Shown here: in pieces, positions 497 to 60,770 of the stretch | Position numbering within the stretch: the first letter of the stretch is position 1 | Layout: every line of letters begins with the position of its first letter | Sequence record: NC_048048.2 | DNA: 64,000 nt | Reading direction: 5' to 3' (one strand) | The notes under the pieces: generated by a model | Databases searched by the model: none | What the model was told of the DNA's origin: nothing | The model's input: only the letters and a program-made list of their open reading frames with translations | Made by a program: the position numbers and the translations under genes

Positions 497-534
497 GGTT
501 TAGGACACCCCGCAAAGGGTGTCAACAGTTTTCT
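497..534 (-). promoter_or_regulatory. class A promoter (AGAAAACTGTTGACA-N17-TAAACC) within stem-loop
   Basis: Repeated motif; GACACCC/GGGTGTC inverted repeat in the spacer. Confidence 0.8.
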
Positions 535-565
535 AGCGTGTCCTTTGTCCTGGGATCAAGGACGC

Positions 566-973
566 CTAGTAGTGGTTGGACAGCAATCCGCGCTGGTCCC
601 AGATGTTGGGGCGGGGCTGGATGTAGGGATTGCGCGGATCGTCCCAGGCCAGGGTGTACTCCAGACCGATCATCTTGGCGCAGTCGGCGCCGATCAGGAA
701 CCAACCCATGTCCGAACCGTGGCGAGGCCAGCCGTCATGCGGCTCAGGATAGGGCTCGACCTGGGCGAAGAGATCAGTATCGTCCGGGTGCAGCGCATAG
801 GGACCGCCGCCGACTGTGTGGACCACCCGGCGCGGCTGACCTTCCTTCAGGTCCTTCTGGCAGCGGCAGCAGAAGTGGTTGGACTTCGGATCACGGCGGT
901 AGTCTGGCTCCATCCACACCGCCCGGTACGGGACGCCGGGCATGAACTCCTGCACGAAGGTCGCCTTAGCCAC
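566..973 (-). CDS. hypothetical protein, Cys-containing (CCRC...GADC), possible Zn-binding
   Basis: ORF track 135 aa, overlaps upstream neighbour. Confidence 0.7.
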   Translation of the reverse strand: MAKATFVQEFMPGVPYRAVWMEPDYRRDPKSNHFCCRCQKDLKEGQPRRVVHTVGGGPYALHPDDTDLFAQVEPYPEPHDGWPRHGSDMGWFLIGADCAKMIGLEYTLAWDDPRNPYIQPRPNIWDQRGLLSNHY

Positions 974-1271
974 GCTGGTGGGCCTTCCAACGCGCGTCGA
1001 GGTCTTCCTTGGTCACGAAGGTGCGCGAGGCCTCTTCGCCGCCATAGGGACGCTCGCAGATGAACACCGTCCCCGGCGTCGCCAGCGCAATTTCGGCGCC
1101 TTTGCTGCCTCCCGCCTCCGAGCCGTACTGGCTCATGTGGTAGGCGGAGACCTCGAAGGCTTCGGCGGCCTTGGCCTTAGAGGTGGTGGCCACATAGGCG
1201 TCGCCCTGGCGAGAATTACCGGGGATCGCCGGGTGATAGAAGACGATGCTGAAGACTTTGAGCTTGGCCAT
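966..1271 (-). CDS. hypothetical protein
   Basis: Start moved to MAKLKV (1271), coupled to upstream stop. Confidence 0.7.
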   Translation of the reverse strand: MAKLKVFSIVFYHPAIPGNSRQGDAYVATTSKAKAAEAFEVSAYHMSQYGSEAGGSKGAEIALATPGTVFICERPYGGEEASRTFVTKEDLDARWKAHQRG

Positions 1272-1552
1272 CAGTCGATCACCGCGATGAAGTCGCTTCG
1301 ACGCCGCTTCCAGATGGCCGGACGCCCCGAGGCTTCCAGTTCGGCAGCCACCTCGGCGGTCACCGGCAGGTAGCCGATCTTGTCGTAGGTGGTGTATTCG
1401 AGGGGCGTCGGGCCAGTCTGCGAGGCAGCGTAGTCTTTCAGCCACGCTTCGGCCGTCGCTTCGGTCCGGGTCAGCATGAAGCCGTCGGGGCGCTGGCCCC
1501 AGCCGCTTTCATGTTCGGTCCCAACGAGAACGAAGAGGAAGGTGTGGGTCAT
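1271..1552 (-). CDS. hypothetical protein
   Basis: Start MTHTFLF after AGGAGA RBS, downstream of promoter. Confidence 0.7.
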   Translation of the reverse strand: MTHTFLFVLVGTEHESGWGQRPDGFMLTRTEATAEAWLKDYAASQTGPTPLEYTTYDKIGYLPVTAEVAAELEASGRPAIWKRRRSDFIAVID

Positions 1553-1579
1553 CGGTCTCTTTCTCCTGGTTGTGACACC

Positions 1580-1617
1580 ATCTAGGCGCACGCCAGGAAC
1601 GATGTCAACCGTTTTCT
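1580..1617 (-). promoter_or_regulatory. class A promoter (AGAAAACGGTTGACA-N17-CTAGAT) within stem-loop
   Basis: Repeated motif, intergenic. Confidence 0.8.
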
Positions 1618-1621
1618 CGCA

Positions 1622-1918
1622 CTAGGGACGGAACTCGATCTCGTCCCAGTGCTCGTGGATGTAGGCGGCCAGTTCCCGCCCCAGGGGCGTGATCACGTGC
1701 CAGCGCTTACCTTCGACCGCTTCGGCCACGCCCAGCGCCTTGAGGTGATTTTCAACACCGATCGCGGCGAGCGTGGTCCACTTGCCGCAGCCCGTGAAGA
1801 TGCGAGTATCACCCCACGGGCAGTCAGGATTAAGCACGCCAGGGTGGGTAATGAAACGCCGCAGATTGATGGCGCCGTTGAGCGTCAGGCGCGCGGCCAG
1901 GGCGGCAAGGTCAGCCAT
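1622..1918 (-). CDS. hypothetical protein
   Basis: Start MADLAAL, overlaps upstream gene end. Confidence 0.65.
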   Translation of the reverse strand: MADLAALAARLTLNGAINLRRFITHPGVLNPDCPWGDTRIFTGCGKWTTLAAIGVENHLKALGVAEAVEGKRWHVITPLGRELAAYIHEHWDEIEFRP

Positions 1919-2784: not shown

Positions 2785-3551
2785 TAGGTGCGAGCCTCTT
2801 TGACGATCGCGATGGCCTTCATCAGGCTGTCGACCTCGTAGTTGGTCAGATCGATAGCCTTGGCCTCGGCCTTGGCGCGGATGCCTTCGAGCGCCTCGAT
2901 CAGGTCGGCCTTGTCCTGGGCCGCCTTCTCCTCCGACAGGCGCCAGCGCTCGGCGCGCTCAGCGGCGGCCTTCTTGGCGTTTTCGGCGGATTCTCTCGCC
3001 TGGGTCAAGGAAGGTAGCTTGCCAGCCAGGAATTGCTTGTAGGCCTGGAAGAGGGCCATTTCCTTGGAGTGGGCCGTGTCGACATAGGTGCGATTGGCCT
3101 GCTTGTCGACGCCGTCGACCGTGACCGTGTAGGGCTCGACGGCGGGATCGGGCTTCTGGCCCACCAGCGTCTCGCCCGTGGTTTGATCGACGTGCAGGCT
3201 GCGGATCATCCACTTGCCGCCGTAGCCGGTGTCGAAGAGGATGTGCGCGAACGGCTCGCCGTTCAGCGTGGCGTAGTTGGCGCTTTTCCAGCCCTTTTTT
3301 CGGGGATTGGTGTCTTCCCACGGCACGATCTTCAGGTCCGCGCCGGCCTCGGCCAACTTCAGCTTGCCGGCATACCGGGCGCAGCCAGGGCAGGAAGCAC
3401 GCATGGGGTCTTCGGTGGAGCGGTCAACGCGCGTCGTGTCCCGCTCACCGCAGTAGAAGACGTACTCGACCCGAGGGGTCGTGGTCCCGGCATAGAAGCC
3501 CAGGTCATTCTTCTCTTTGATGAGATGGGTGTGCTGAGCGCGTCGGGCCAT
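2784..3551 (-). CDS. hypothetical protein
   Basis: ORF track 255 aa, AAGGAG RBS, directly after promoter. Confidence 0.75.
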   Translation of the reverse strand: MARRAQHTHLIKEKNDLGFYAGTTTPRVEYVFYCGERDTTRVDRSTEDPMRASCPGCARYAGKLKLAEAGADLKIVPWEDTNPRKKGWKSANYATLNGEPFAHILFDTGYGGKWMIRSLHVDQTTGETLVGQKPDPAVEPYTVTVDGVDKQANRTYVDTAHSKEMALFQAYKQFLAGKLPSLTQARESAENAKKAAAERAERWRLSEEKAAQDKADLIEALEGIRAKAEAKAIDLTNYEVDSLMKAIAIVKEART

Positions 3552-3575
3552 GCTGATCTCCTTGCTGTTCGAGAC

Positions 3576-4061
3576 CTAGATAGGAGCCCAATGGTCGCTT
3601 GTCAACCGTTTTATCGCAGGATGGATATGCCAGCGCCACCAGCGGCTCGCCACGACCAGACCGCCAGCGATCGTTAGGGACAGAAGCTGCGCGGCGTAGA
3701 GAACGTTGATCACCAGCACATAGCCACGACTGGAGACGTGGACGCCGAGTACGGCCTTCAGGTACCAGAAGACAAGATGCGAGGCCATCTGCGCATAGAG
3801 GGACAGGGTGACCGCGCGGCTCCACCATGTAGGTCGCGTGAAACAGATCAGGCCGGCCAAGGCGCCCTGGACGCCATCGATCCAGGTATAGACGATCAAA
3901 GAGGAGGAATCGACGTAGAAGTAGACGCGCATCAGGTTGCAGACGATCCAACTGATGCAAAACATCGTGGCGACCGACTGCATGGCCGGGCGCCAGGAAA
4001 GCAGCGCAACCACTCCGGTAAGGAGGGTCGCGCCAGCAAAGATTTGCCCCCAGAACCCCAT
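3576..4061 (-). CDS. multi-pass membrane protein
   Basis: 161 aa with about 5 hydrophobic segments. Confidence 0.7.
   Translation of the reverse strand: MGFWGQIFAGATLLTGVVALLSWRPAMQSVATMFCISWIVCNLMRVYFYVDSSSLIVYTWIDGVQGALAGLICFTRPTWWSRAVTLSLYAQMASHLVFWYLKAVLGVHVSSRGYVLVINVLYAAQLLSLTIAGGLVVASRWWRWHIHPAIKRLTSDHWAPI
3577..3614 (-). promoter_or_regulatory. class A promoter (ATAAAACGGTTGACA-N17-TATCTA)
   Basis: Repeated motif, overlaps 3' end of upstream gene. Confidence 0.75.
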
Positions 4062-5594: not shown

Positions 5595-5758
5595 AGGCCG
5601 TAGGCCTCCATGACCAGCAGGATGGCCCACGGGGCGAACGCGAAGGCCCCCGCCAAGGCAAGCGCCAGCGATCCGCCCACCATGCCGCTGATCATCAGCG
5701 AAGCACCAGCGACGGTGAAGATGCTGTAGCCGACCAATCGGTGCTTGCGGCGCGACAT
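5591..5758 (-). CDS. small membrane protein (55 aa)
   Basis: Hand-translated MSRRKHRLVGYSIFTVAGASLMISG...; GGAGG RBS; below ORF-track cutoff. Confidence 0.65.
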   Translation of the reverse strand: MSRRKHRLVGYSIFTVAGASLMISGMVGGSLALALAGAFAFAPWAILLVMEAYGL

Positions 5759-5788
5759 GATGCCTCCGGGTTGCTGAAGTTGAGAGGA

Positions 5789-5826
5789 CTTCTATGACGC
5801 GAATGGCGTCGAGTCAACTCATTTCT
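5789..5826 (-). promoter_or_regulatory. class A-variant promoter whose 17-bp spacer is exactly a class B operator (5795-5811)
   Basis: AGAAATGAGTTGACT-[CGACGCCATTCGCGTCA]-TAGAAG on minus strand. Confidence 0.7.
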
Positions 5827-5980
5827 TGTAGAAGTGCGAAGCTGCCCAAATAAGGGCGCCAACACCTGCTAGGCCCCAGATCAGGGTCGACCCATGCAGG
5901 ACGATGCGCGCATGCGAGACATAGTAGACCAGTCCTGCGCCGACGATGACGGCAATGGCGATGCCGAATTTGGAATTCAT
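5819..5980 (-). CDS. small two-helix membrane protein
   Basis: Start MNSKFGIA after GAGGA RBS. Confidence 0.65.
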   Translation of the reverse strand: MNSKFGIAIAVIVGAGLVYYVSHARIVLHGSTLIWGLAGVGALIWAASHFYKK

Positions 5981-15827: not shown

Positions 15828-16060
15828 CCAAGACCTACTTCACCCGAGACGGGCAAGTCTACAAGCTGCAACTCGGGGAAGAAATCCCGATGCCGCTCGG
15901 CGGCGCCAAGCTGCGGCACACCCAGCACCTGACCGACGCCGGCTTCAACAAGGCCGCCTACCCCGAGGTCGCCGAAAAGGAACTGGCCCAGGCCGCCGAA
16001 CTGGCCGAGGCCATCCGTGAGGTCGATCCGACCTTCACCGGTGAAGCGGGCTTCTGCTAG
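15824..16060 (+). CDS. hypothetical protein
   Basis: ATGA-coupled start MTKTYF. Confidence 0.65.
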   Translation: MTKTYFTRDGQVYKLQLGEEIPMPLGGAKLRHTQHLTDAGFNKAAYPEVAEKELAQAAELAEAIREVDPTFTGEAGFC

Positions 16061-16096
16061 AAATCTGTTGACAGGCCTCCTCGCCATCACGTAAGA
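16059..16096 (+). promoter_or_regulatory. class A promoter (AGAAATCTGTTGACA-N17-GTAAGA) within stem-loop
   Basis: Repeated motif. Confidence 0.8.
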
Positions 16097-16124
16097 GAGC
16101 GTGACACCAACGAGGAGGCCCGTC

Positions 16125-16430
16125 TTGAACGAACGCTACGAAGTCCGGTTCATCACGCCCGAGGGCGTACCGAACCCCAAGGGCGCCTACACCTATAGCG
16201 ACGCCCTGTTCGTCCGGGACTCGGCGGCCAAGATGGACCCGCCCTACGCCCTGGCCAATCCCGACATCGTGCGCTTCACCGAGACGGTGATTCCCGCCTC
16301 CGCCTATCCGCGCCTGCTGGAGCCGCTGACCGGCCTGGAGATCGCCGAAATCCGCACCGCTCTGCGTCGCGGCTGCGACGAGCGCACCGCGCAACGCGCC
16401 CTGGCCCAGATGGGAATCTTCGACCGATGA
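16125..16430 (+). CDS. hypothetical protein
   Basis: TTG start after GAGGAGG. Confidence 0.65.
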   Translation: MNERYEVRFITPEGVPNPKGAYTYSDALFVRDSAAKMDPPYALANPDIVRFTETVIPASAYPRLLEPLTGLEIAEIRTALRRGCDERTAQRALAQMGIFDR

Positions 16431-17342: not shown

Positions 17343-18200
17343 ATGACGACGTTCGAGATCGTTGACCGCGAGAACACCCCTGGAAGCCAAGGCGGCGTCG
17401 ACTACGGCTCCACGCCCTTGACCGTCCTGGCGCGCTCGCCGGTCGCGGCCCTGCTCTGGATGCCGGGCGGAACCTATCATTCCGGGATTGGTCAACGCTC
17501 CTACGCCTCGGCCTATATGATGGTGATCAAGGGCCGCAGCCTGAGCGTCTGGGAGCGCAACAAGAAGCATGACTTCGAGCGCAAGCTGCATGAGCCGGCC
17601 AAGCGCCTATCGTCGGCGATGATCATGGAGCGGGCTGAGAAGATCAACGAGTTCTTCGAGGCCGACATCGCCGTCGAACTGGCCAAGGCCGTCAAGCAGC
17701 GCAAGACGCTGCTGGTCGATGGCGGTGGCGAGCCGTTCAAGGTGGACGCCAGGGTCGAGCGCAAGAAAAAGGAGGCCACGGCCGCCAAGATCGCGGCGGA
17801 AGCTGGCGTGGTGCGCTGGATCGAGCCGATCGACGTCGCCCACTGCCGCCAGTGCGGGACCAAGCTGGTCCCGGCCCTGGAAAAGCACTACGTCGACCCG
17901 AAGGTCTTCCAGCCGACCTCGCTGGAGGATGTTCAGCGTCAGTTCAACCACCTCCAGGTCGTTGCGACCGAGGGCTATTTCGGCAACGATCCTGAAGAGG
18001 CCCACCTGATCGGCGCCTACAAGACCTGGAACGGCCGGTCCTACATGCGTGGGCCGTACTTCTGCCACAACGATTGCGCGAAGGACTATGCGGTCCGCGC
18101 CGTCGAGACCCTTGAGGCCCTCCCGATCATCCCGCCGCTTAGCGACGAGGAACTGGAGGCCCAGGAACGCGCCGAACGGGACGCTGTCTGGGGTTTGTGA
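17343..18200 (+). CDS. hypothetical protein with CxxC...CxxxC
   Basis: ORF track 285 aa, AGGAG RBS. Confidence 0.75.
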   Translation: MTTFEIVDRENTPGSQGGVDYGSTPLTVLARSPVAALLWMPGGTYHSGIGQRSYASAYMMVIKGRSLSVWERNKKHDFERKLHEPAKRLSSAMIMERAEKINEFFEADIAVELAKAVKQRKTLLVDGGGEPFKVDARVERKKKEATAAKIAAEAGVVRWIEPIDVAHCRQCGTKLVPALEKHYVDPKVFQPTSLEDVQRQFNHLQVVATEGYFGNDPEEAHLIGAYKTWNGRSYMRGPYFCHNDCAKDYAVRAVETLEALPIIPPLSDEELEAQERAERDAVWGL

Positions 18201-18248
18201 GAAAACTGTTGACTTGACGTGGTTGCTTGCACTATGTCACGGTCAACA
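18200..18248 (+). promoter_or_regulatory. class A promoter within 42-nt stem-loop
   Basis: AGAAAACTGTTGACT-N17-CTATGT; TGTTGAC/GTCAACA arms. Confidence 0.8.
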
Positions 18249-18263
18249 TCACAGGAGACCCGC

Positions 18264-18635
18264 TTGACCGACCAGTCGAAGATCGCTGAACGCCAACTCG
18301 CGCCCAAGCAGATGCTGCACTGGGCGCGGCGTCACGGCCTCGTGCCGATCCGGTACAGCAAGCGCCGCTGGCGGGAATATCCCCTCTTCAAGACCGCCAA
18401 GCTCAAGTTCATCGCCGGCTGCCGCGACCAGAAGCGCTTCGTCCGCGTCCTGCCCCACCTTGACCGGATGGAAATCTGCGACGGCTTCATGGACCGCTGG
18501 GCCAACTCGCACGGCGCCGAGGTGGTCATGCCCAAGACCATGGCCGAGTTTGACGTGGCGATCGAGACCCTCCTGAAGGAGTCTGAGCCCAGAGTCCGAG
18601 ACACCCACCCCGTCGAGGAGAACGCCAATGGCTAG
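18264..18635 (+). CDS. hypothetical protein
   Basis: TTG start after AGGAGA. Confidence 0.7.
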   Translation: MTDQSKIAERQLAPKQMLHWARRHGLVPIRYSKRRWREYPLFKTAKLKFIAGCRDQKRFVRVLPHLDRMEICDGFMDRWANSHGAEVVMPKTMAEFDVAIETLLKESEPRVRDTHPVEENANG

Positions 18636-21171: not shown

Positions 21172-21409
21172 ACGCGTCCTGGTCGCCGCCATCAATGGCG
21201 ACCGCAATCGCTACTATGCCGAGCCCTGGTGCGATCCTTGGAACACCTGGGCCTTCCGGTGGAAGGTCTATCGCCACGATCGTCTCCCATGTGAGGGCCG
21301 TATGAGCCAATACATAGGCGAGGCCGCGTCGCTCATGGAAGCCCGGAAGGTCATCGCCCGGAACATCCGCAATATGCGGCGCCGCTCCAGGTTGCGAGAA
21401 AACAGTTGA
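21164..21409 (+). CDS. hypothetical protein
   Basis: 81 aa; stop is the TGA of the promoter TTGACA. Confidence 0.65.
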   Translation: MSERVLVAAINGDRNRYYAEPWCDPWNTWAFRWKVYRHDRLPCEGRMSQYIGEAASLMEARKVIARNIRNMRRRSRLRENS

Positions 21410-21444
21410 CAAACGCCAGCATCTCCCCAAGGATGCTGGCGTTT
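21397..21444 (+). promoter_or_regulatory. class A promoter overlapping a 13-bp-stem hairpin followed by a T-rich tract (terminator-like)
   Basis: AAACGCCAGCATC/GATGCTGGCGTTT then TCATTT. Confidence 0.75.
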
Positions 21445-21460
21445 TCATTTGGAGGATCGC

Positions 21461-21718
21461 ATGACCCGCACGCCGCCGCCGCTGAATGGCGAAAAGACCC
21501 ATCCGCTGTCGGCCGTTGCCCTGAGCACGCTGCGGAGCATCAGCCGCTTCCCCTGCCCGACCCAGGAGATCAATCACGGCCTGATCAACCGCTACCAGCG
21601 CGAGGGCCTGATCGAACTCTACGAGGACGTCAGTCCCTACAAGACCCACAAGGGCAAGAAGATCAGTTTCGTGCGCATCTCGCCGGCCGGCGAGGCCATT
21701 CTGCAAGAAATCGGTTGA
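21461..21718 (+). CDS. hypothetical protein, possible winged-helix
   Basis: GGAGG RBS; ends inside next promoter motif. Confidence 0.65.
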   Translation: MTRTPPPLNGEKTHPLSAVALSTLRSISRFPCPTQEINHGLINRYQREGLIELYEDVSPYKTHKGKKISFVRISPAGEAILQEIG

Positions 21719-21755
21719 CACTTGATCGATAGGCGTCCTAGATATCGATCATCAG
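21706..21755 (+). promoter_or_regulatory. class A promoter within stem-loop
   Basis: AGAAATCGGTTGACA-N17-CTAGAT; TGATCGATA/TATCGATCA arms. Confidence 0.8.
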
Positions 21756-21769
21756 CAGAGGAGAGCCCT

Positions 21770-22201
21770 GTGGAAGTCAACGCCAGCAACCTGCGCAACG
21801 CCCTGATCGTCCTCAAAGAGGAAGACCCCAATCTGGCCCACCTCCTGGACCCGCTCATCGACGACCGCGTCACCCTGCGCCAGTTCGCCGACATCCTGAA
21901 GACGGTCTACGAGACGGGCTATAACCGCCCGTCCCTGTCAAGCTTCACCGTCACCGGCTCCAAGCACATCGGCTTCCCGATGGACATGCTGCGCAAGGGC
22001 GACTGCTGGCCGGCCACAACCGACGACGCCAACCTGATCGAGAAGCTGATCGAACGCAACGACGGCTACATCGCCCGTCTGCCCAAGAACGTCACGATCC
22101 GCCTGACCACCTGCGCCAGCGAGTACGCCCAGGACAACGCCGCCGCCCGCTGGGCCTCGTTCGGCTGGACCGTCGCGACCCTGGAACAGGACGCGGCCTG
22201 A
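21770..22201 (+). CDS. hypothetical protein
   Basis: GTG start after GAGGAG; FPMDMLRKGDCWP motif. Confidence 0.7.
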   Translation: MEVNASNLRNALIVLKEEDPNLAHLLDPLIDDRVTLRQFADILKTVYETGYNRPSLSSFTVTGSKHIGFPMDMLRKGDCWPATTDDANLIEKLIERNDGYIARLPKNVTIRLTTCASEYAQDNAAARWASFGWTVATLEQDAA

Positions 22202-22620: not shown

Positions 22621-23818
22621 CCTGGACCTCCTCAACGAGTTCTGGACCCGCACCGAACGCGAAGACGAGTTCTCCGGCTACCGTGATTTCGTGCGCCGGG
22701 CGCGCGCCTTCACGCTCGATGACGACATGGCCTCGACGGTCAGCCGCTTGGCGGTCCGCGCCGATGACAAGATGCTCCTGCGGTACAAGCAGGCGGCCCG
22801 TCTCCCGTACCCGGAGATGTGGGTCGAGATGGACTATGAGCAGGGCTTTGCCGAGAACGCGTCAAACCGCCATCTTTTTGGCCGTCCCGAGCGCGTCGGC
22901 TGGATGCTGTCTCAAGGTCACCCCAACTACGGCCCGGATGCGATCAAGGTGATCCGCGTCGCCAAGACCGATGGCGGCGGTCCGCTTGCCGGCGGCGATC
23001 AACTGGCGTCGGTCTACCCGATGCAGATGATCTGGCTGCCAGAGGGCAGGATCAGCTATGTGCGCCAGGACGTTCGACGGGGCTTGCCGGCCAACGCCGA
23101 GGCCTGGATCGAGGCGTGGCACACCGCCGAGGAGAAGTTCAACAACCAGTCCGCCTCCTTGCGGCTGGCCTGGACTCCGAACGATCCCGGCGTCCCACGC
23201 GACGCTCAAGGCGACGCTGACGAATTGCTACGCCGCGCCAGCGCCGAGACCGACAAGCTGCCTCTGGCCGGCCATGTCATCGTGACCCTGGAAGGGCGCG
23301 CCTTGACCGCCTTGGCCCGGCGCCGTGATCCCAAGGAGATGTTCACGGGCGTCAGCGAACTGATGGGCGCGGCGCTCTACGATCAGACGGGCGACGCCGG
23401 TTTCCTGGTCGCGGCCCTGTCCCTGATCAACGAAATACCCGTCCGTTTCGTCGAGCATCAGCCGCGCGGGTCGCTACGGGCCGGCGGACGGCTGCGGCCG
23501 TACATGCGCTCCTCGATCGTCTCGATCGAAGTGCCCGCCACCCGTCGCCGGATCAAGGACATCGAAAAGACCATCAAGCAGCGCGTCGAGGCCGCCAAGC
23601 GCGCCCGCCACGAGGTGCGCGGCCATTGGATGACCGCCGACAAGCCGCCGCGTGTCGAGCAGACCCGCGAGACCAAGCGCTGGGAGACCTACTTCGACCG
23701 CGATGGCCGTATTCGCTGGCGGACCTGGATCGACAACCACATGCGCGGCAGCGCCGAGGTGGGCTACGTCCAGCAGGTCTACGAGGTGACCGAGAACCCG
23801 CGCCGTTCGAACTACTAG
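22613..23818 (+). CDS. conserved phage hypothetical protein
   Basis: 401 aa; C-terminal RHEVRGHW...WIDNHMRG motif. Confidence 0.75.
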   Translation: MANLDLLNEFWTRTEREDEFSGYRDFVRRARAFTLDDDMASTVSRLAVRADDKMLLRYKQAARLPYPEMWVEMDYEQGFAENASNRHLFGRPERVGWMLSQGHPNYGPDAIKVIRVAKTDGGGPLAGGDQLASVYPMQMIWLPEGRISYVRQDVRRGLPANAEAWIEAWHTAEEKFNNQSASLRLAWTPNDPGVPRDAQGDADELLRRASAETDKLPLAGHVIVTLEGRALTALARRRDPKEMFTGVSELMGAALYDQTGDAGFLVAALSLINEIPVRFVEHQPRGSLRAGGRLRPYMRSSIVSIEVPATRRRIKDIEKTIKQRVEAAKRARHEVRGHWMTADKPPRVEQTRETKRWETYFDRDGRIRWRTWIDNHMRGSAEVGYVQQVYEVTENPRRSNY

Positions 23819-23854
23819 AAAACGGTTGACACAGTTGGTAGGCGTCTCTATGAG
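23817..23854 (+). promoter_or_regulatory. class A promoter within stem-loop
   Basis: AGAAAACGGTTGACA-N16-CTATGA. Confidence 0.8.
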
Positions 23855-23884
23855 GGGGCGACTGAAACCAGGAAAGGATTTGCT

Positions 23885-24412
23885 TTGACCGACGAGACCG
23901 AAACCGAGCACGCCCTGTATTACGCCCTCGTCGCTGGCGCGGCCGAGTTCGACGGGCTGCCGGCTGTGCTCCTGGCGGTCTGGTCCGAGAACGACAAGAC
24001 CGTCACCGGCCGGGTCGTCGAGCAGATCTACACTTACAACAACAACATCACCCACGTGACCAAGCCCGATCCGAAGAACGCGATCTTTCGGGGCCGCCTG
24101 GGCACCAACCTCTTCCGCGCCTCCAAGAACCGCCTGCTGGCCACGTTCGCCGATAAGGCGACGGCCGAGGAGGCGACCTTCAAGGCCAATACCATCGCTT
24201 CGGTCCAGGTCGACGAGTTCGGCGAGAGCGAGAAGATCAAGGAGATGCGTCAACGCGCCTTTGATCTGGAGCAGCAGGCCCGCAAGCTGCGCGAAGAGAT
24301 CAGGCCTCTACGCGCCGCTGCCTGGGAAGACCGCTTCCAGCAAATCCTCGGCACGCTGCGCGACTCCGGCGCCACTCACGTCTGGTCGCCGCCCGAGGAC
24401 GTCACGGCATGA
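23885..24412 (+). CDS. hypothetical protein
   Basis: ORF track 175 aa. Confidence 0.7.
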   Translation: MTDETETEHALYYALVAGAAEFDGLPAVLLAVWSENDKTVTGRVVEQIYTYNNNITHVTKPDPKNAIFRGRLGTNLFRASKNRLLATFADKATAEEATFKANTIASVQVDEFGESEKIKEMRQRAFDLEQQARKLREEIRPLRAAAWEDRFQQILGTLRDSGATHVWSPPEDVTA

Positions 24413-25448: not shown

Positions 25449-25458
25449 AAATTCTACA

Positions 25459-25496
25459 AGAAATCTGTTGACACCCTCTTTGAGCGTAGCCTATGG
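25459..25496 (+). promoter_or_regulatory. class A promoter
   Basis: AGAAATCTGTTGACA-N17-CTATGG. Confidence 0.8.
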
Positions 25497-25525
25497 TGCG
25501 TACATAGCCGCTTGAGGAGAGCCCC

Positions 25526-26359
25526 GTGTCGATCACCATGCCCGCCCAGAAAGACGCCGACGGCAACTGGCCCGAGACGGCGTACACGCCGGTCGAACCC
25601 TTCACCGAGGGCTCCTACCCGACCACGCAGCGTTATGACCACGAGGCCAAAAAGAGCGTCCTGGTCTACGACGAGTTCGACCCGGCCACCGGACGCTACG
25701 TCCAGGTCACGCCGATGTTCGGCCCCTACCGTCGCAATCACCTCGTTGGCTATCGGCCGACCGAACACTTCGAGTGCGTCATGGCCGAGACCTACAAGGG
25801 CCGGGTCCTGAGCCTGGGCGAAGTCAACGGCTATCACGACAGCGACTTCTACGCGATCGCCTGGAACCCTGAGAAGCCCGGCTACGATCGCATCGAGTAC
25901 GCCTCGACGCGCGGCTACACCTACCATTGCAGCGCCTATGTCGACGCCACCGACGAGGTTCGCGCCGCCGCCCAGGCCTATGACGAGGAGCAGACCCGGC
26001 TGCGGATCGAGGCGCGGGCCAAGGCCGTGGAAGACGCGCGCGCCGATTACGCCAAGACGCTGGAGGTCGACACCTCGGTGATCTCACGCCTGGAGCAGGC
26101 CTATGGGCAAATCGACCCGCGCCCCATCTCGACCTACGGACGCTATGGCGGCCATTATACCTCCCTGTCGCGGGCCTATGGCTTCACGCGGGAGTCCAAC
26201 GCCCTCGACGCTGTCCTGGCGCTGATCATCAGCGCCAAGAAGGGTCGCCTGCGCAGCGAATTCAAGAAGAATCTCGCTGCCCAGGTCATGGCTTGGCTGG
26301 CCGATCCGGCGCCCAAGTACCCGACCCCGCTGTCCACCAAGCAACTCCAATACATCTAA
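25526..26359 (+). CDS. hypothetical protein
   Basis: 277 aa, GAGGAG RBS. Confidence 0.75.
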   Translation: MSITMPAQKDADGNWPETAYTPVEPFTEGSYPTTQRYDHEAKKSVLVYDEFDPATGRYVQVTPMFGPYRRNHLVGYRPTEHFECVMAETYKGRVLSLGEVNGYHDSDFYAIAWNPEKPGYDRIEYASTRGYTYHCSAYVDATDEVRAAAQAYDEEQTRLRIEARAKAVEDARADYAKTLEVDTSVISRLEQAYGQIDPRPISTYGRYGGHYTSLSRAYGFTRESNALDAVLALIISAKKGRLRSEFKKNLAAQVMAWLADPAPKYPTPLSTKQLQYI

Positions 26360-27819: not shown

Positions 27820-27824
27820 CTGCA

Positions 27825-27862: not shown

Positions 27863-27891
27863 ACGCTCATCCGCCGCTAGAGGAGACCCCG

Positions 27892-36400: not shown

Positions 36401-36406
36401 CCTGCA

Positions 36407-36455
36407 AGATAACTGTTGACACCTTAGTCGGCGCCGACTACCCATGACGCAACAG
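36407..36455 (+). promoter_or_regulatory. class A promoter within stem-loop, heading the NAD operon
   Basis: AGATAACTGTTGACA; CTGTTG/CAACAG arms; inner palindrome TAGTCGGCGCCGACTA. Confidence 0.8.
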
Positions 36456-36475
36456 CTTTCACCAGGGGAGTCCAC

Positions 36476-37075
36476 GTGACCTACGAATCCAAACTGAACC
36501 CGCCGGGCTTCGTCACCGAGGAGGGCGGTTTCCGCGACTACCTCCACGTCTGGATCAAGGGTGACGCCGACACCGAATTGGCCCTGGGCGTCAGCCTGGG
36601 CACGGACGAGGCCGACGAGCCGCCCTGCCTGCGCGAAGCCATCGCGGTGATCTCCGCCTTCGCGGCCGGCGTGATCATGAAGCAGCCGGGCTTTGCCTCC
36701 ATGAACGAGGAGCAGCGCGAATACGCTGTCCAGGGCGGCGTCTCCCAGCTTCTGATGGCGGCGATCCAATCGGCTGCTCCGACCTTCAGCCCCCACCCGC
36801 ACCTACTGCCGCCGCCAGAGCCGATCGAGGACGACCCCGATGCGGTCCAGGCCGTGGGTATCTGGGCCACACCCGGCGCCGAGGGCGGCTTCTACGCCGC
36901 GTTCGTCGACCATCCCGACACGATGCCGGTAGGCGCCATTCTGGCCGCCGCCGCGCTGGAAGCCGCCGCCGAAGGTTCGGACGAGGACGCCTACGACACC
37001 GCCCTGGTGCGTGCCGTCCAGGCCGACTTCAACAAGACGATCGACACCGCGCTGATGGTGGGCACCGTCCAGTGA
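36476..37075 (+). CDS. acidic hypothetical protein
   Basis: 199 aa, GGGGAG RBS. Confidence 0.7.
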   Translation: MTYESKLNPPGFVTEEGGFRDYLHVWIKGDADTELALGVSLGTDEADEPPCLREAIAVISAFAAGVIMKQPGFASMNEEQREYAVQGGVSQLLMAAIQSAAPTFSPHPHLLPPPEPIEDDPDAVQAVGIWATPGAEGGFYAAFVDHPDTMPVGAILAAAALEAAAEGSDEDAYDTALVRAVQADFNKTIDTALMVGTVQ

Positions 37076-55443: not shown

Positions 55444-55462
55444 CCGTTAACCACAACGCGTG

Positions 55463-55513
55463 AGAACGCTGTTGACAACCTAAGATCATGCGCCTATATG
55501 CCGCATCCTTGAC
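55463..55513 (+). promoter_or_regulatory. class A promoter within stem-loop
   Basis: AGAACGCTGTTGACA-N16-CTATAT; ATGCG/CGCAT arms. Confidence 0.75.
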
Positions 55514-55540
55514 GCGGATGCTTTCATGGAGGCGCCAATC

Positions 55541-55663
55541 ATGTTACGACATATCTGGTGCGACATGTTCCACTGGCTCCGCTGGGAACTGATCGACGCC
55601 CCCGACAAGGCCAATCGCCGCTGGCGGTGCAAGGAGTGCGGTCACTTCCATCATGTCGACTAG
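55541..55663 (+). CDS. 40-aa Cys/His zinc-finger-like peptide
   Basis: Hand-translated MLRHIWCDMFHW...WRCKECGHFH; GGAGG RBS. Confidence 0.65.
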   Translation: MLRHIWCDMFHWLRWELIDAPDKANRRWRCKECGHFHHVD

Positions 55664-55859: not shown

Positions 55860-56071
55860 TGCCCTGGGACCGGATGGAGCGTCACAAGACCCGTAGCTGC
55901 ACCTCCAAGGTCCGCTATGGCTCCGAGGCCCTGGCTCGCGACGGCGCCCAGGACATGCTCAAGCGCACAGGCCGCAAGCGCGCCGGTGTCTATCCGTGCG
56001 AGTTCTGTGGCCTTTGGCACGTCTCCAGCGACGGCGTCGGGCGCTTCATCGTCCTGCGAGAAAACTGTTGA
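55859..56071 (+). CDS. Zn-ribbon small protein (paralog of 54605-54910)
   Basis: CTSKVRYGSEALA...VYPCEFCGLWH; ends inside promoter motif. Confidence 0.7.
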   Translation: MPWDRMERHKTRSCTSKVRYGSEALARDGAQDMLKRTGRKRAGVYPCEFCGLWHVSSDGVGRFIVLRENC

Positions 56072-56096
56072 CAAGACCCTCGTAAGGCCCGATAAC
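56059..56096 (+). promoter_or_regulatory. class A promoter within stem-loop
   Basis: AGAAAACTGTTGACA-N17-GATAAC. Confidence 0.8.
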
Positions 56097-56130
56097 GCGA
56101 GCCTCGACGACGAAGAAAGGCCCGCCGCCC

Positions 56131-58299
56131 ATGATGGAAGACAGCCCCCTTTGGAAAGCCATTGGTCTCTGGGAAGAGATCACCGGCGTGGCTGTGCCCA
56201 ATGCCGACGGCTCGTTCAAGGGCACGCTGGGCCAATACGACATTCGCCAGACCTACATCGAACTGCGCGAGACCCTGGAGCTTGATCCCACCGAGGTCAC
56301 GACGAACCTGATCTTCAATACGTTCGTCAAGCAGTGGATGGCCAAGCAGCAAAACAGCCTGCTCGACCTCTTCAACGACCCGGTCAAGTACGAGCAGATG
56401 CTGGAAAAGCCGCGTCTGCTGATGAGCATCCTCAACCGCCCCGAGATCATCGAGGCGCGCGATGCGTTCCTGGCGTCGTTGAACGAACTGACCGTCCGCT
56501 ACGGCGCCGATCAGCGCAGCGATCTCCAGAAGACCCTGGGTCAACACGACCTGCTCGCCTTCCTGCGCCGCGATGCGCTGCGGGCCTCGGCGCGTCTGCG
56601 CATCCACCAGTTCACCTCGGGCGCCCCCGAGGCCGCCGACTACAAGCCCGTCTTCGTCAAGACCGTCCACCAGTGGTGGAACATCAATTCGCTGCTCGAA
56701 GCGGCCCTTCGCATGCCGTCGGGCATCTCGCTGAACCTGATCCGCGCCCCGGACATGTATGAGTCGTTCTTCTGTTTTTGCATCCGCAACGGCGGCAACC
56801 TTTTCATTCTCACCGACGCGCCCGAAAACGCCCATCCGCTGCAAGGCCTGTTTCGTCGCAAGCCCGAGCGCGCCTATGAGGCCCGCGTCAGCAAGTCGTG
56901 GTTCCCCTACGACCTGATGAACCTGGAGTGGGACGAGGAGGCCGAGCAGTATTTCCAGGCCGAGTCCAAGGTCACCGCCGTGGCGACCTATCAAAACCAG
57001 CACCTGCCGCTGAAGCCGATCAACGAGCTTGATCCGCCCGAATTCCTGTGGTGCTCGATGATGCTCGACCTGATCGTCGAGAAGTTCTGGCGACAGAACT
57101 ACCAGCACCCGACCCTGTCCTACACCGGCGAGATGCTGGTCATCGAAAACCGTCTGGAGGCCAGTGCCGCGAGCGCCGGCCTGCCCGTGGCCGCCTACCA
57201 GCCGCTGAACCTGCCGGCCTTGACCGCAGCAGATATGAAGACCGACCTCCTGGACGAGGCCGCGATCGGCCGATCCTATCACAAGCCCAACCTGTGGCTG
57301 GAGGAGCGCTATGGCCACAAGGTCCAGGACGCGGCCCTCAACCTCGTCGCCAACGCCGACCAGTTGGTCCTGATGGACAAGGCCTCCGGCGAGATCACCA
57401 CCGAAGGTCGCGACTTCATCAAGAAGTACGAGGCCATCCCCTCGGTGTTCACCGATCAGAAGGCGCAGATGATGGCCGGCCGCGTCAAGATGGAGGTCAT
57501 CAACCCCACGCGGTTTGGCACGCGTGAGGAACTGGACAACGATCGCAAGTTCATCGCCCGCTACAATTACGCCACCGAGATCGGGCGCATGGCCAAGGAA
57601 GAGTTCCAGCAGCGCTCCGACGAAATCATCAAGTGGTGGGAAAAGGCCGTCCGCAAGAATCGCGACAACCTGCTGGCCTACGCCGCCGCCGAGAACGTCT
57701 GGGTCTGGTCGGACATGAAGGGCTCGGGCGACACCTTCGACCACATGCGCTCGGGCGCCGGCCCGCGCTACCGCGTCGACCTGGGCCAAGGTCGCGACAG
57801 CGACGGCTATTTTAACCGTCGCTACAAGGACGCCCACAAGTTCACCCACCGCGTGTCGATGGACGACTTCGACTACAGCACCCTGGGTTTCAAGTGGATC
57901 AACCTTGGCGACTATGAGCACAAGCGTCGCTATCTCTGCGCGATCAACGACACCAAGGCCTCGTTCATGCAGTGCTTCCATCCGACCAACGCCGCCGAAC
58001 TGGCGGTCCTGGCCGGCTGCGCGGTCGAGGAGCTTCCCGACGTGCTCCAGCACTGGACCCTGGCCGATCCCTACGACGGCAATCACCTCTTGAGCCGCAT
58101 CGACCCGCTCAACTGGCAGGTCAAGAACCCCTGGCTGAGCCTGAGCTTCCGGGTCGGCATCCCGCTGTCGGTTCGAGGCGCGGCCAAGATCGCGCCCTTG
58201 GCCCGCAAGCCGGCGATCCCTGACCTGATACCCGACGAACTGATCGTCGACGATCGTCCCTCCTTCCCGTCTCCTTTCAGGACCGATCCCGCCGCATGA
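56131..58299 (+). CDS. large hypothetical protein (722 aa)
   Basis: Longest ORF, strong GC3 bias, own promoter. Confidence 0.8.
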   Translation: MMEDSPLWKAIGLWEEITGVAVPNADGSFKGTLGQYDIRQTYIELRETLELDPTEVTTNLIFNTFVKQWMAKQQNSLLDLFNDPVKYEQMLEKPRLLMSILNRPEIIEARDAFLASLNELTVRYGADQRSDLQKTLGQHDLLAFLRRDALRASARLRIHQFTSGAPEAADYKPVFVKTVHQWWNINSLLEAALRMPSGISLNLIRAPDMYESFFCFCIRNGGNLFILTDAPENAHPLQGLFRRKPERAYEARVSKSWFPYDLMNLEWDEEAEQYFQAESKVTAVATYQNQHLPLKPINELDPPEFLWCSMMLDLIVEKFWRQNYQHPTLSYTGEMLVIENRLEASAASAGLPVAAYQPLNLPALTAADMKTDLLDEAAIGRSYHKPNLWLEERYGHKVQDAALNLVANADQLVLMDKASGEITTEGRDFIKKYEAIPSVFTDQKAQMMAGRVKMEVINPTRFGTREELDNDRKFIARYNYATEIGRMAKEEFQQRSDEIIKWWEKAVRKNRDNLLAYAAAENVWVWSDMKGSGDTFDHMRSGAGPRYRVDLGQGRDSDGYFNRRYKDAHKFTHRVSMDDFDYSTLGFKWINLGDYEHKRRYLCAINDTKASFMQCFHPTNAAELAVLAGCAVEELPDVLQHWTLADPYDGNHLLSRIDPLNWQVKNPWLSLSFRVGIPLSVRGAAKIAPLARKPAIPDLIPDELIVDDRPSFPSPFRTDPAA

Positions 58300-58706: not shown

Positions 58707-58715
58707 CGGTGTGCG

Positions 58716-58764
58716 AGAAAACTGTTGACAGCTTTCTGGGAACATCCTAGAAGACTGTCAACAG
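58716..58764 (+). promoter_or_regulatory. class A promoter within 43-nt stem-loop
   Basis: CTGTTGACAG/CTGTCAACAG plus TTCTGGGA/TCCTAGAA. Confidence 0.85.
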
Positions 58765-58783
58765 CCGCCGCAAGGAGACAGCC

Positions 58784-59185
58784 ATGACCGCCCCGACCGT
58801 GACCCGCAACCTGATCGTCGTCGACAAGGACGTGGTCAATCCGAACCACGATCGCCGCGTCAAGCATGGCGAGGACAGTCTGGCCAAGCTCACCGTCGGC
58901 GAACGCCTCGTCGTTACCACGGCCGACTATGGCACCCACAAGGAAGTCAGCCTGCGCCGCATCGGCGCCAACACCAGCCTCTGGAAGCGCGCCTTCGTCG
59001 AGGCGATCCTGGCCAATGCCTCGCCGGCCGAGCCGGTGAGCTTCGTCGAATGGGCGGCGCTGACCGGCGACGAGGGCGAGGGCATCAACCGCCGCATGCT
59101 GGAAATCCTTTTCCAGACCAAGCCCGACATCGTCAAGAAGGCCCACGCTTCGGCCGTGGCGCGCTATGACGAGTTCGAGGACTGA
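58784..59185 (+). CDS. hypothetical protein
   Basis: 133 aa, AAGGAG RBS. Confidence 0.7.
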   Translation: MTAPTVTRNLIVVDKDVVNPNHDRRVKHGEDSLAKLTVGERLVVTTADYGTHKEVSLRRIGANTSLWKRAFVEAILANASPAEPVSFVEWAALTGDEGEGINRRMLEILFQTKPDIVKKAHASAVARYDEFED

Positions 59186-59187
59186 TC

Positions 59188-59541
59188 ATGAAACAACGGA
59201 GGATCAAGGATCGCTACGGCGATAGCCGCCGCGCGCCCATGACGATCAACGACGCCATCGTGGTCATCCTGGAGCACATGCAGTCCTCGGTCGCGAGCAT
59301 GGCTCGCATGCCCGAGTACCAGAACCCCCGCAATCCCAACCGCCTGCCCGAGAAGTCGCTATCGTCTTCCAAGGTCCACCCGGCCCGCTATTGGCAGGCC
59401 GCCGCGCGCCTGATCAAGGAAGGCGCCGTGGTCGCCACTTGTGGCAGCCCCGACGTCCGCGACGACTTCAATAACCCGCTGTTCATGGTCGCTGGGCCAA
59501 ACTACGACAAGGCCATCCGCACCTACCTGGGAGACGTCTGA
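59188..59541 (+). CDS. hypothetical protein
   Basis: 117 aa. Confidence 0.65.
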   Translation: MKQRRIKDRYGDSRRAPMTINDAIVVILEHMQSSVASMARMPEYQNPRNPNRLPEKSLSSSKVHPARYWQAAARLIKEGAVVATCGSPDVRDDFNNPLFMVAGPNYDKAIRTYLGDV

Positions 59542-59660
59542 TGGGCGGGCAGTTCTGGGTCGGGATTGCGGTCTGGTCTGGCGGTCTGGTTTGGGTCCTG
59601 TCCGTGATTCGACATCTGAGGTACCGGGCGCTGGAAAAGCGCCTACAAGAAAACTGTTGA
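59541..59660 (+). CDS. 39-aa single-pass membrane peptide
   Basis: TGATG start MGGQFWVGIAVWSGGLVWVLSVIRHLRYRALEKRLQENC; stop in promoter TTGA. Confidence 0.5.
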   Translation: MGGQFWVGIAVWSGGLVWVLSVIRHLRYRALEKRLQENC

Positions 59661-59685
59661 CTCACGGCTCTCGTCGGTCTAGGTA
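59648..59685 (+). promoter_or_regulatory. class A promoter
   Basis: AGAAAACTGTTGACT-N16-CTAGGT. Confidence 0.8.
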
Positions 59686-59710
59686 AGGGCTACGCAACGA
59701 GGAGGCCCTG

Positions 59711-60757
59711 ATGACGAAGCAACGGTTCGAGGTCCTGGACGCCCTGCGCGGCGTCGCCGCCGTACTGGTGATGCTCTATCACGTGGGCAACACCTTCTCG
59801 GCCGAGGCCGGCATTGACCATCTGGCGATCTTCGCCAAGCATGGCTGGGTGGCGGTCGACTTCTTCTTCATGCTGAGTGGCTTCATCATCGCCCATGCCT
59901 ACGACGCAAAGCTGGCGGCAGGGCTGGGCGTCACTTCGTTCATGCGAGCACGCATCAAGCGACTCTATCCCCTGTACTTGGTTGGAGCGCTCCTGGGAGC
60001 GATCGCGACAGTCTCGCTGACCATGGCCAAGGGCCAGCCCGTCGGTCCTGCCGAGGTGGTCCTGGTCCTGACCACCACGCTGCTATTCTGCCCCATCCTG
60101 CATGCCGCGCCCGCCTTCATTTTCAACGTCCCGGCTTGGTCCCTGTTCTTCGAGATCGTCGCCAATCTCGCCTATGCCGCCGGTTTCAAGTGGTCGTCCA
60201 AGCGCGCCCTGCTGCTCGCCTCACTGCTGGGGTTGGTCGGGCTCTGCGCCAGCCACCTTGCCTACGGTACGCTGGACGTGGGCTGGGCCGGCAACAATTT
60301 CATGGGTGGACTGGCGCGCATCACCTTTGCCTTCCCCCTAGGCGCACTGCTTTATCGCCTGCACGTTGAAGGCCGCTTCTCCTGGGTACCGCGCGTCAGC
60401 CCGGCCACGCTGATCGCCCTGCTGGTGGTGTTGACCTGCCTGCCGGCGCCGCGCGATACCCTGATCGATCTGCCGATCATCGCCGTGATCTTCCCCTTGT
60501 TCCTGATCGTCGCGGCCCAGGCGCGTTTCGCCAAGCCAGCTAAACTGCTTCTGCAAGGCGGCGACCTCTCCTACGCGCTCTATGCGACCCACACGCCGGT
60601 TCTCGTCCTGGTGTCAGCAGTGCAGTTCGCCACGCATGCCTCGCCCCTGATGCTGCTCGCCGCAGCACCCCTGGCCATCCTTCTAGCGATGGTCGCCCAG
60701 CGTCTGACGACTCAATCGCACAAGAAAGCTGTTGACACCCATCTGGTGGTGGCCTAA
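59711..60757 (+). CDS. acyltransferase-3 family (OafA/YrhL-like) membrane O-acyltransferase
   Basis: LDALRGVAAVLVMLYH, AVDFFFMLSGF, RIKRLYP, WSLFFE, GDLSYALYATH; about 10 TM helices. Confidence 0.9.
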   Translation: MTKQRFEVLDALRGVAAVLVMLYHVGNTFSAEAGIDHLAIFAKHGWVAVDFFFMLSGFIIAHAYDAKLAAGLGVTSFMRARIKRLYPLYLVGALLGAIATVSLTMAKGQPVGPAEVVLVLTTTLLFCPILHAAPAFIFNVPAWSLFFEIVANLAYAAGFKWSSKRALLLASLLGLVGLCASHLAYGTLDVGWAGNNFMGGLARITFAFPLGALLYRLHVEGRFSWVPRVSPATLIALLVVLTCLPAPRDTLIDLPIIAVIFPLFLIVAAQARFAKPAKLLLQGGDLSYALYATHTPVLVLVSAVQFATHASPLMLLAAAPLAILLAMVAQRLTTQSHKKAVDTHLVVA

Positions 60758-60770
60758 GACTAGGCCATCA
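60723..60770 (+). promoter_or_regulatory. class A promoter within stem-loop
   Basis: AGAAAGCTGTTGACA-N16-CTAAGA; TGGTGGCCTA/TAGGCCATCA arms. Confidence 0.8.

Follow-up and report, generated by a model that had tools for sequence, protein, structure and literature searches.

The DNA analysed here, a 64-kb window, is 100% identical to record positions 186001-250000 of Caulobacter phage CcrSC (MH588547.2 / NC_048048.2), a member of the genus Bertelyvirus and subfamily Dolichocephalovirinae with a genome of 317,489 bp. The window has a G+C content of 63%, and its genes run leftward from 1 to 5980 and rightward from 6316 to 63000; nearly all of them are small and annotated as hypothetical, including those that flank the elements described below. 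These elements are 19 repeated promoters, most of which share their sequence with a hairpin, and they were compared with the orthologous sites of two relatives, CcrBL9 (86% identity) and RB23 (~82%). The analysis covers the 64-kb window and these two relatives, and orthologous sites are non-independent observations. Each site is named by the window position of its anchor, the T of TTGACA, from which all offsets are counted.

The 19 copies reported in the initial annotation were all recovered at the same coordinates and on the same strands: a 16-nt weight matrix built from them scores 21-32 bits at each site, and nothing else in the 64 kb reaches 10 bits. The consensus is RAGAAAaCtGTTGACA-N17±1-CCTAnRa, with RC-RAGAAAaCtG-TTGACA as its aligned 5' part. 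Both TTGAC and the AGAAAaC block are found in 19/19 sites, the spacer is 16-18 nt long (usually 17), and within CCTAnRa the T is kept in 17/19 copies and the A in 19/19. Transcription is predicted to start 6-7 bases past the -10 hexamer, where 12/19 sites have C at -1 and 11/19 have A at +1. Ten of the 19 sites contain CAAC between offsets 30 and 45 (background 6.9%), and because some of these ten have no hairpin, we consider it a conserved box of the start region. In all copies the promoter is followed by a Shine-Dalgarno sequence (SD) and then by the annotated start codon, 52-69 nt past the anchor, while the stop codon of the upstream gene falls within offsets -21..+29 in 14 of the 19. Some of these stops overlap the promoter boxes, with TGA inside the -35 TTGACA three times (21407-21409, 21716-21718 and 56069-56071) and TAA or TAG inside the -10 (CCTAAG/CTAG) twice (60755-60757 and 3576-3578). 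The annotated start is TTG at three of the 19 promoter-proximal genes (16125, 18264 and 23885) and GTG at several others.

The consensus for Caulobacter RpoD is TTGaCgS at -35 and GCtANAWC at -10 (PMC8144410), and both boxes of the 19-copy motif fit this sigma-73 consensus at sigma-70-like spacing. The 19 elements are read as host-RpoD promoters with predicted start sites, set in very compact intergenic gaps. A scan for Escherichia coli-consensus promoters and terminators is insensitive in this DNA, as it demands T at -10 position 6 and unbranched stems. The upstream (UP)/-35 block, AAGAAAACTGTTGACA, also lies 5' of TATAAT boxes, spaced by 17 bp, in numerous low-G+C viral contigs that are unrelated (IMG/VR loci L007-L107), and is therefore better seen as a generic strong-promoter composite than as a marker of this phage group. 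The 15-mer AGAAAACTGTTGACA was tried as a marker of relatives and rejected, the IMG/VR scan having given mostly single chance or generic matches.

The promoters are self-complementary well beyond chance. Folding energies were expressed as z-scores against dinucleotide shuffles over two spans, a short one (e.g., offsets -4..+44) and one running through to the start codon. The mean z of the 19 sites is -2.2 to -2.35 (-2.35 for offsets -4..+44, with 9/19 below -2), and 11/19 fall below -2 in one of the two spans. Values near zero were obtained for random 49-mers of the window (mean z -0.07; 4.7% below -2) and for upstream segments of 122 promoter-less genes (mean z -0.23; 7.4% below -2). Native sites fold at -15.7 kcal/mol versus -11.6 for chimeras that join the left and right parts of different sites (0/20,000 permutations; P<5e-5), so the complementarity is site-specific and not the product of the shared boxes alone. 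The excess of self-complementarity that the initial annotation had perceived is real and specific to these sites, and the stems that it quoted, at 31999-32041, 58722-58764, 36413-36455, 18207-18248, 21411-21444 and 21723-21751, are all present.

Brevundimonas phage Bambus (ON529853.1, 93567-134643; 66% G+C), a more distant member of the same subfamily, also has repeated promoters, of the form GTTGACA-N14-TTCCTTTACA. These have no AGAAAAC block and no excess of hairpins (mean z -0.03; chimera P=0.89), which argues that the structural signal in CcrSC is not created by the method and that the feature is specific to the Bertelyvirus lineage. Bambus promoters have a GACGAC-like start region 3' of the -10.

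The discriminator/+1 region is the common partner in two enriched contacts within the CcrSC sites, one with the -35 box (1.90 expected pairs; chimeras 1.16, shuffles 0.85) and one with the first half of the spacer (2.03; chimeras 0.89, shuffles 0.89). In maps of pair probability the least paired positions are the A-tract and the -10. The initial annotation placed nearly all copies in a uniform stem-loop of 40-45 nt from -35 to +1, a description that fits only about eight of the 19, in which the -35 or early spacer pairs with +1 (18209, 21406, 21715, 32000, 36416, 58725, 5817 and 60732). At about seven others, roughly a third of the sites, the spacer or -10 pairs with the SD (16068, 25468, 27834, 30490, 1608, 55472 and 59657, whose pairing is clear in the relatives though weak in CcrSC), an arrangement that had been overlooked. 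One site has a hairpin internal to the spacer (525), and folds over both spans gave no significant structure at three (3605, 23826 and 56068). Composite stems of ~17-20 bp with small internal loops are found at 4-5 of the 19 sites (32000, 58725, 18209 and 21406), and the remaining stems measure 6-10 bp. The stems given for each site below come from single-sequence folds, RNAalifold having been uninformative on family 25468, whose stems shift register between phages.

469..537, minus strand: site 525 (position weight matrix score 30.3 bits), through the ATG of gp421; hairpin within the spacer, GACACCCC/GGGGTGTC; z -2.1 to -2.3; RB23 has instead a different stem of 8-10 bp across the -10.

1550..1620, minus strand: site 1608 (28.5 bits); spacer TTCCTGG with CCAGGAG over the SD, and GGTTG with CAACC; z -2.3 in the short span, -3.7 through to the start codon.

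3549..3617, minus strand: site 3605 (25.2 bits); no significant hairpin (z -0.5); upstream stop codon in the -10 region.

5756..5829, minus strand: site 5817 (21.1 bits); outer stem between the -35 and +1 regions, inner GACGC/GCGTC in the spacer; z -2.6, orthologues -2.5 and -2.0; the inner stem is now TGTCAC/GTGACA in RB23.

16056..16127, plus strand: site 16068; 10-bp spacer arm GGCCTCCTCG with CGAGGAGGCC over the SD, and an inner 6-bp stem; z -5.8 through to the start codon; 10-bp match in all three phages (P against shuffles = 0.003).

18197..18266, plus strand: site 18209; hairpin of ~17 bp from the -35 box to +1 (TGTTGAC.../...GTCAACA); z -3.9 to -4.4, orthologues -3.4 and -5.7.

21394..21463, plus strand: site 21406; stem of 13-14 bp filling the spacer, then TTTTCATTT; z -6 to -8; the only copy that resembles a sense-strand intrinsic terminator.

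21703..21772, plus strand: site 21715; 9-bp TGATCGATA/TATCGATCA around the -10; upstream TGA stop inside TTGACA; z -1.9; stem retained in CcrBL9 and lost in RB23.

23814..23887, plus strand: site 23826 (27.8 bits); no significant hairpin (z -0.3, -0.8 and +0.4 across the three phages); downstream gene with TTG start.

25456..25528, plus strand: site 25468; spacer CTCTTTGAGCG with CGCTTGAGGAG over the SD, including three G.U pairs; z -1.6 in CcrSC, -3.4 in CcrBL9 and -2.5 in RB23.

27822..27894, plus strand: site 27834; GGGGTCTCT, just 5' of and overlapping the -10, with AGAGGAGACCCC over the SD; z -3.1 through to the start codon.

30478..30544, plus strand: site 30490; spacer GGCCTCTT with AAGGAGGCC over the SD, and inner CCCCTT/AAGGGG over the -10; z -1.8 in CcrSC and -3.2 in CcrBL9.

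31988..32061, plus strand: site 32000; 14+6-bp hairpin from the -35 box to +1, with the -10 in the inner stem; minimum free energy -33.2, z -7.9 to -8.8, orthologues -8.6 and -7.7.

36404..36478, plus strand: site 36416; CTGTTG/CAACAG closing around TAGTCGGC/GCCGACTA; z -2.3 to -2.4; last copy 5' of a promoter-free block of ~19 kb; CcrBL9 retains the outer stem and not the inner one.

55460..55543, plus strand: site 55472 (23.5 bits); GCGCCT (-10) with AGGCGC over the SD, around an inner GCATCC/GGATGC-TTTC hairpin; z -1.5 in CcrSC and -2.2 in CcrBL9; longest Watson-Crick match to the SD 6 bp. The inner hairpin (55503-55525; GCATCC-TTGACGC-GGATGC, then TTTC) lies 3' of the -10 and straddles the predicted start; it is kept in CcrBL9, and RB23 has a different one there (CCAAG...CTTGG).

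56056..56133, plus strand: site 56068 (30.9 bits); no significant hairpin (z -1.5 and -0.7); weak -10 GATAAC; upstream TGA inside TTGACA.

58713..58786, plus strand: site 58725; CTGTTGACAG/CTGTCAACAG and a 9-bp inner stem, forming a hairpin of ~19 bp that ends at the predicted +1; z -6.0 to -6.7.

59645..59713, plus strand: site 59657; weak structure in CcrSC (z +0.5 and -0.6).

60720..60795, plus strand: site 60732, within the 3' end of the upstream gene; TGGCCTA/TAGGCCA around the -10 and outer pairs; z -3.0 to -3.6; CcrBL9 has instead GCGGTTGA with TCAACCGC, from the -35 box to +1.

The strength of each hairpin is a stable property of its site across lineages. The z of CcrSC sites correlates with that of their orthologues in CcrBL9 and in RB23 (rho 0.79 each; P=5e-5 for RB23), and the variable part of the sites is only 52% identical between CcrSC and RB23. 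If the two arms of a stem decayed independently, exchanging the left and right halves of orthologous sites would cost nothing; such swaps between CcrSC (or CcrBL9) and RB23 cost 2.1-2.7 kcal/mol (P=3e-4 to 2e-3; summarised as 2.5 kcal/mol, P≈6e-4), which indicates that the arms co-evolve between phages, as would be expected of a selected structure.

Compensatory changes in orthologous sites point the same way. For family 21406, RNAalifold gives 20 consensus pairs with an unbroken core, in which columns 19/39 appear as AU, CG or GC and columns 23/35 as UA or CG. In family 525, GACACCC/GGGTGTC of CcrSC is replaced in CcrBL9 by GACAGCC/GGCTGTC, a C/G swap that keeps the stem. The RB23 orthologue of 58725 is only 28% identical over offsets 6-44, and folds as strongly (z -5.9) with the new arms ACACCCCTTCT/AGAAGGGGTG. 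In families 25468 and 59657 the spacer arm and the SD flank change together: both arms differ in the perfect 10-bp CTCCTCGGCG/CGCCGAGGAG of RB23 at the former, and the orthologues of the latter have spacer-SD stems of 7-9 bp (TCCTCGA/TCGAGGA in CcrBL9 and TCTCCTCGT/ACGAGGAGA in RB23, z -2.8). Pairing partners also move, as at 27834, where RB23 has GTCTCCT(C)/GAGGAGAC at a shifted position, and at 30490, where the arm facing the SD in CcrBL9, GGCCTCCT, lies ten bases along the spacer (offset 6 to 16).

These patterns bear on the possibility that the structure has no function, the GTTGAC of the -35 and the GTCAAC at +1 being complementary by chance and the repeats being extended or repaired by templated (quasi-palindrome) mutation. 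The occurrence of CAAC at hairpin-less sites would fit such an origin, as would the residual -35/+1 pairing of chimeras (1.16 expected pairs versus 0.85 in shuffles) and the strand symmetry described below, which suits a DNA-templated process. However, the site-specific complementarity far exceeds the conserved boxes, arms have been replaced by unrelated sequences that still pair (58725 in RB23), hairpin strength is stable per site, and the SD-pairing sites do not involve the conserved boxes, so that a functionless origin seems to us improbable.

Whether the hairpins act as RNA or as DNA is less readily read from the folds. The initial annotation took G-T pairs in the stems as a sign of selection on RNA or single-stranded DNA, a view that the counts contradict: among ~880 pairs there are 40 internal G.U on the sense strand versus 54 on the antisense (~4-5%). 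The sense-minus-antisense difference in energy, +0.6 to +1.2 kcal/mol, equals the background of coding-strand 56-mers (+1.35). We accordingly rejected strand asymmetry as evidence for RNA, the small antisense advantage being compositional background; with strand-symmetric folding, RNA and DNA are not distinguishable on that basis. A scan of the window against Rfam returned two tRNAs only and no known RNA family at the promoters. The broader proposal, that these promoters double as structured elements, keeps its support from arm co-evolution and from a geometry that confines the hairpin to read-through RNA or DNA; its argument from strand does not survive.

Strand symmetry and the rarity of G.U would be consistent with inverted repeats that act in the DNA, with a cruciform or hairpin across -35 to +1 extruded under supercoiling and switching the promoter, and the strongest copies (32000, 58725, 21406 and 18209) are near-perfect palindromes with terminal loops of 3-7 nt. 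Many stems have interior loops of 10-20 nt, which disfavour cruciform extrusion, and three copies have no repeat at all. Furthermore, the place of the stem relative to the boxes is not fixed and moves between orthologues (525 and 30490), and the ~7 sites that use the SD as the 3' arm make sense for RNA and not for promoter DNA. A DNA switch is therefore a doubtful explanation, and it is mainly because of the SD-pairing sites that we prefer RNA over DNA.

Matches between spacer and SD are longer than in controls. The longest Watson-Crick match averages 5.0 nt versus 4.09 nt in 120 promoter-less genes (P=0.0013), and matches of at least 7 bp are found at 12 of 61 sites from the three phages, orthologues being non-independent, versus 3 of 120 controls (Fisher P=1.7e-4). 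The computed probability that the SD is paired is 0.74-1.00 in read-through RNA and 0.37-0.62 in RNA beginning at the predicted +1, with 1.00 versus 0.40 at 16068, 0.85 versus 0.37 at 25468, 0.74 versus 0.37 at 27834 and 0.86 versus 0.62 at 30490.

We propose that each element is a cassette for host RNA polymerase with RpoD, its principal sigma factor, in which the upstream stop codon, an A-rich UP-like block (RAGAAAaC), TTGACA, a spacer of 17±1 nt, CCTAnRa and C[A] at +1 would be followed by a leader of 8-20 nt, the SD and the start codon. The promoter fills an intergenic gap of roughly 60 nt (range ~50-120 nt), so any intergenic hairpin has to be built from the promoter's free positions, namely the spacer and the discriminator/leader, and this confinement accounts for the observed geometry. 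The 5' arm would come from the -35 flank or the spacer, and the 3' arm from the discriminator/+1 region (~8 sites) or the SD (~7 sites). At all structured sites the predicted start falls 3' of the 5' arm, which restricts the hairpin to read-through RNA or DNA. Locally started RNA would lack the 5' arm and carry a short open leader, while RNA reading through from an upstream promoter would fold the hairpin and so insulate the cassette, either by attenuating or processing the read-through transcript or by stabilizing the 3' end of the upstream message. At the SD-pairing third of the sites, the ribosome binding site would be hidden in read-through RNA, and the downstream gene would be translated mainly from its own promoter. 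Insulation at the RNA level is in our judgement the most likely function of the hairpins, with about an even chance of being correct.

Several observations weigh against this proposal. The start sites and the read-through RNA are predictions from sequence, the two strands are equal in folding after correction for base composition, so that the folds do not point to sense-strand RNA as the selected molecule, and three of the 19 copies are conserved promoters that have no hairpin. Taken over all sites, the SD pairs with the promoter part at a probability of 0.47, versus 0.43 with shuffled spacers (P=0.27); masking of the SD as a property of all sites was therefore rejected, and is predicted for a subset only. 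Finally, no sense-strand U-tract was found, the 8 nt past each stem containing at most three T and a T-run occurring only at 21406, where it lies partly inside the stem. Classical intrinsic termination by stems that lack a downstream U-tract is unlikely. A pattern-based terminator scan, itself insensitive (it also missed the A-tract/hairpin/T-tract at 62988-63018), flagged no promoter hairpin on either strand.

On the opposite strand, the -35-to-+1 hairpins could serve as antisense intrinsic terminators on which the promoter is superimposed, the complement of the UP-like A-tract supplying the U-tract. The stem end ...GUCAACAG is followed by UUUUCU(C/U)G at 58725, 32000, 18209 and 5817, and by a weaker UUAUCU at 36416; these stems start at offsets -4 to 0, abutting the unpaired A-tract, and the phage uses signals of this kind, as at 62988-63018 by its convergent tRNA genes. 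Against an antisense role, the genes between 6.3 and 63 kb all point the same way with no evident antisense promoter, at the SD-pairing and spacer-internal sites the stem does not adjoin the A-tract, the stem base CAACAG is not G+C-rich, and none of the hairpins was flagged by the scan just described, so we regard it with considerable doubt. A combined version is possible, at rather long odds, in which one element of ~60 nt would serve both strands: forward, as a UP-element promoter with a gate, encoded in its non-contact bases, that closes only on read-through RNA and masks the SD or marks a processing or 3'-end site; backward, as an antisense intrinsic terminator in which UUUUCU, complementary to the UP A-tract, follows the hairpin. 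Such an element would recur at every early cassette.

Within RNA-level insulation, a special case is that the hairpins are sites at which RNase III, or another endonuclease, cuts polycistronic early RNA and leaves a protective 3' hairpin. The elements are intergenic and lie directly 3' of stop codons, and the composite stems at 32000, 58725, 18209 and 21406 would suit the enzyme; moreover, hairpins of the -35-to-+1 type have their 3' end at the predicted +1, which would make processed and primary 5' ends similar. Most stems, however, have 6-10 bp, which is short for RNase III, and their positions and shapes vary between sites and match no Rfam family. Cleavage of this kind seems unlikely.

The repeated cassettes might also act as recombination linkers, exchange between copies inserting, deleting or swapping gene modules, as the initial annotation had suggested. 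The 19 near-identical blocks of 16-20 nt among small hypothetical genes, in a region with 15 indels of at least 60 nt relative to CcrBL9, would favour such exchange. Yet only 3 of these 15 CcrSC/CcrBL9 indels end within 80 nt of a promoter, about what is expected with 19 of ~140 gene junctions, and in the longer genome no indel has a copy on both sides. Module shuffling was rejected for the window on these grounds, which refute the linker reading weakly and leave it very improbable.

Other signals occur in gaps that have no copy of the promoter. The words GTGACR, TGTCAC, TGACGC, TTGACGC and CGATC(R)GTGWCA cluster at 5981-6315, 10926-11025, 40069-40133, 45402-45482, 48210-48268, 50538-50600 (e.g., CTTGACGCCGTGACGTCGATCGTGTCAT) and 63227-63391. 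They are the prevailing signals of the promoter-free block at 36.5-55.4 kb, where genes of the NAD-salvage, HslV-like and RNase H types are found. These clusters may represent a second promoter class or regulator sites. In the same block, a 96-residue open reading frame at 50828-51118 is labelled 'tape measure protein' in CcrSC, CcrBL9 and RB23; the label is probably a carry-over by similarity, as the product is implausibly small for the tape measure of a jumbo siphovirus. Between the last rightward gene and two leftward tRNA-Arg genes, 62988-63018 reads AAAAA-GGCCCGGAG-TCAC-CTCCGGGCC-TTTT, in the shape of a bidirectional terminator.

The motif offers a ready annotation of one promoter class and of transcription units in Bertelyvirus genomes, whose genes are now nearly all annotated as hypothetical. 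The 19 paralogous sites, with and without hairpins and in at least three diverged genomes, also form a natural test set for asking how much freedom spacer and discriminator leave for a second code. The genomics paper on phiCbK (PMC3556154) describes neither promoter motifs nor stem-loops, and no account of this architecture in phiCbK-like or Bertelyvirus phages was found, the original CcrSC and CcrBL9 papers lying outside the literature searched.

Elements of the design have parallels elsewhere. Promoter-coupled terminators have a T-tract just 5' of the -10 and terminate ~10 bp before the start (Fletcher et al. 2026; bioRxiv 10.64898/2026.08.19.745784). As in the Bertelyvirus cassettes, one stretch of DNA between tandem genes is both a stem-loop for the upstream unit and the promoter of the next, with the stem-loop over the -35; here, however, the stems reach +1 or the SD, the -10 falls within the loop or inner stem, and the 19 site sequences show no T-tract at offsets 15-22. 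The hairpins also recall the RNase III sites of the T7 early region, which lie between the cistrons of multi-gene early transcripts and span about two helical turns of duplex RNA, usually with an internal loop; in CcrSC, a few copies have composite stems of ~20 bp in which the internal loops are small. The T7 sites stand apart from promoters, whereas the stems described here overlap promoters and are mostly much shorter.

A parallel to the SD-pairing sites is found in the T4 genes for lysozyme (gene e) and I-TevI, where a hairpin hides the ribosome binding site in upstream-initiated RNA and a promoter inside the hairpin gives translatable RNA (PMC3014915). At ~7 sites of CcrSC, the SD is likewise predicted to pair with the 5' arm in upstream-initiated RNA, and local transcription to start between the arms. 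The internal promoter of T4 is a late one and sets timing, while upstream and local promoters here share a single RpoD-type motif; moreover, the device is restricted to a few special genes in T4 and is here, as predicted from sequence, repeated at many.

The closest overall likeness, already suggested in the initial annotation, is to the promoter-early stem-loop (PeSL) cassettes of T4-type phages (Arbiol et al. 2010, PMC2839356; Comeau et al. 2014, PMC4122927), whose stem-loops lower read-through in a reporter (PMC2839356). The architecture fits closely: an upstream stop in an A/T-rich stretch is followed by sigma-70-type -35 and -10 boxes and a stem-loop whose sequence varies, and then by the SD and start codon. 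The stem-loop varies in place, lying between the boxes, over either box or before the start site, as in the five PeSL subclasses, and many copies stand between small genes of unknown function in a variable region. The Bertelyvirus cassettes differ in that indels between relatives, which for PeSLs are expected to end at the cassettes through recombination between copies, do not map to the copies, in that roughly one stem in three has the SD as its pairing partner, and in that U-tracts are absent. They also belong to an unrelated lineage, a G+C-rich jumbo siphovirus of an alphaproteobacterium, with a -10 of Caulobacter type. A composite promoter/stem-loop cassette of the PeSL kind is the best reading of these elements, with a mechanism that we infer from their geometry, and they appear to be an independent occurrence of the T4-type design. 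If the hairpins insulate, a design known from A+T-rich T4-type phages would have arisen independently in a G+C-rich Caulobacter jumbo phage, and could be a general solution for phages with many strong promoters arranged head to tail, each block being expressed from its own promoter and not from the read-through of its neighbours.

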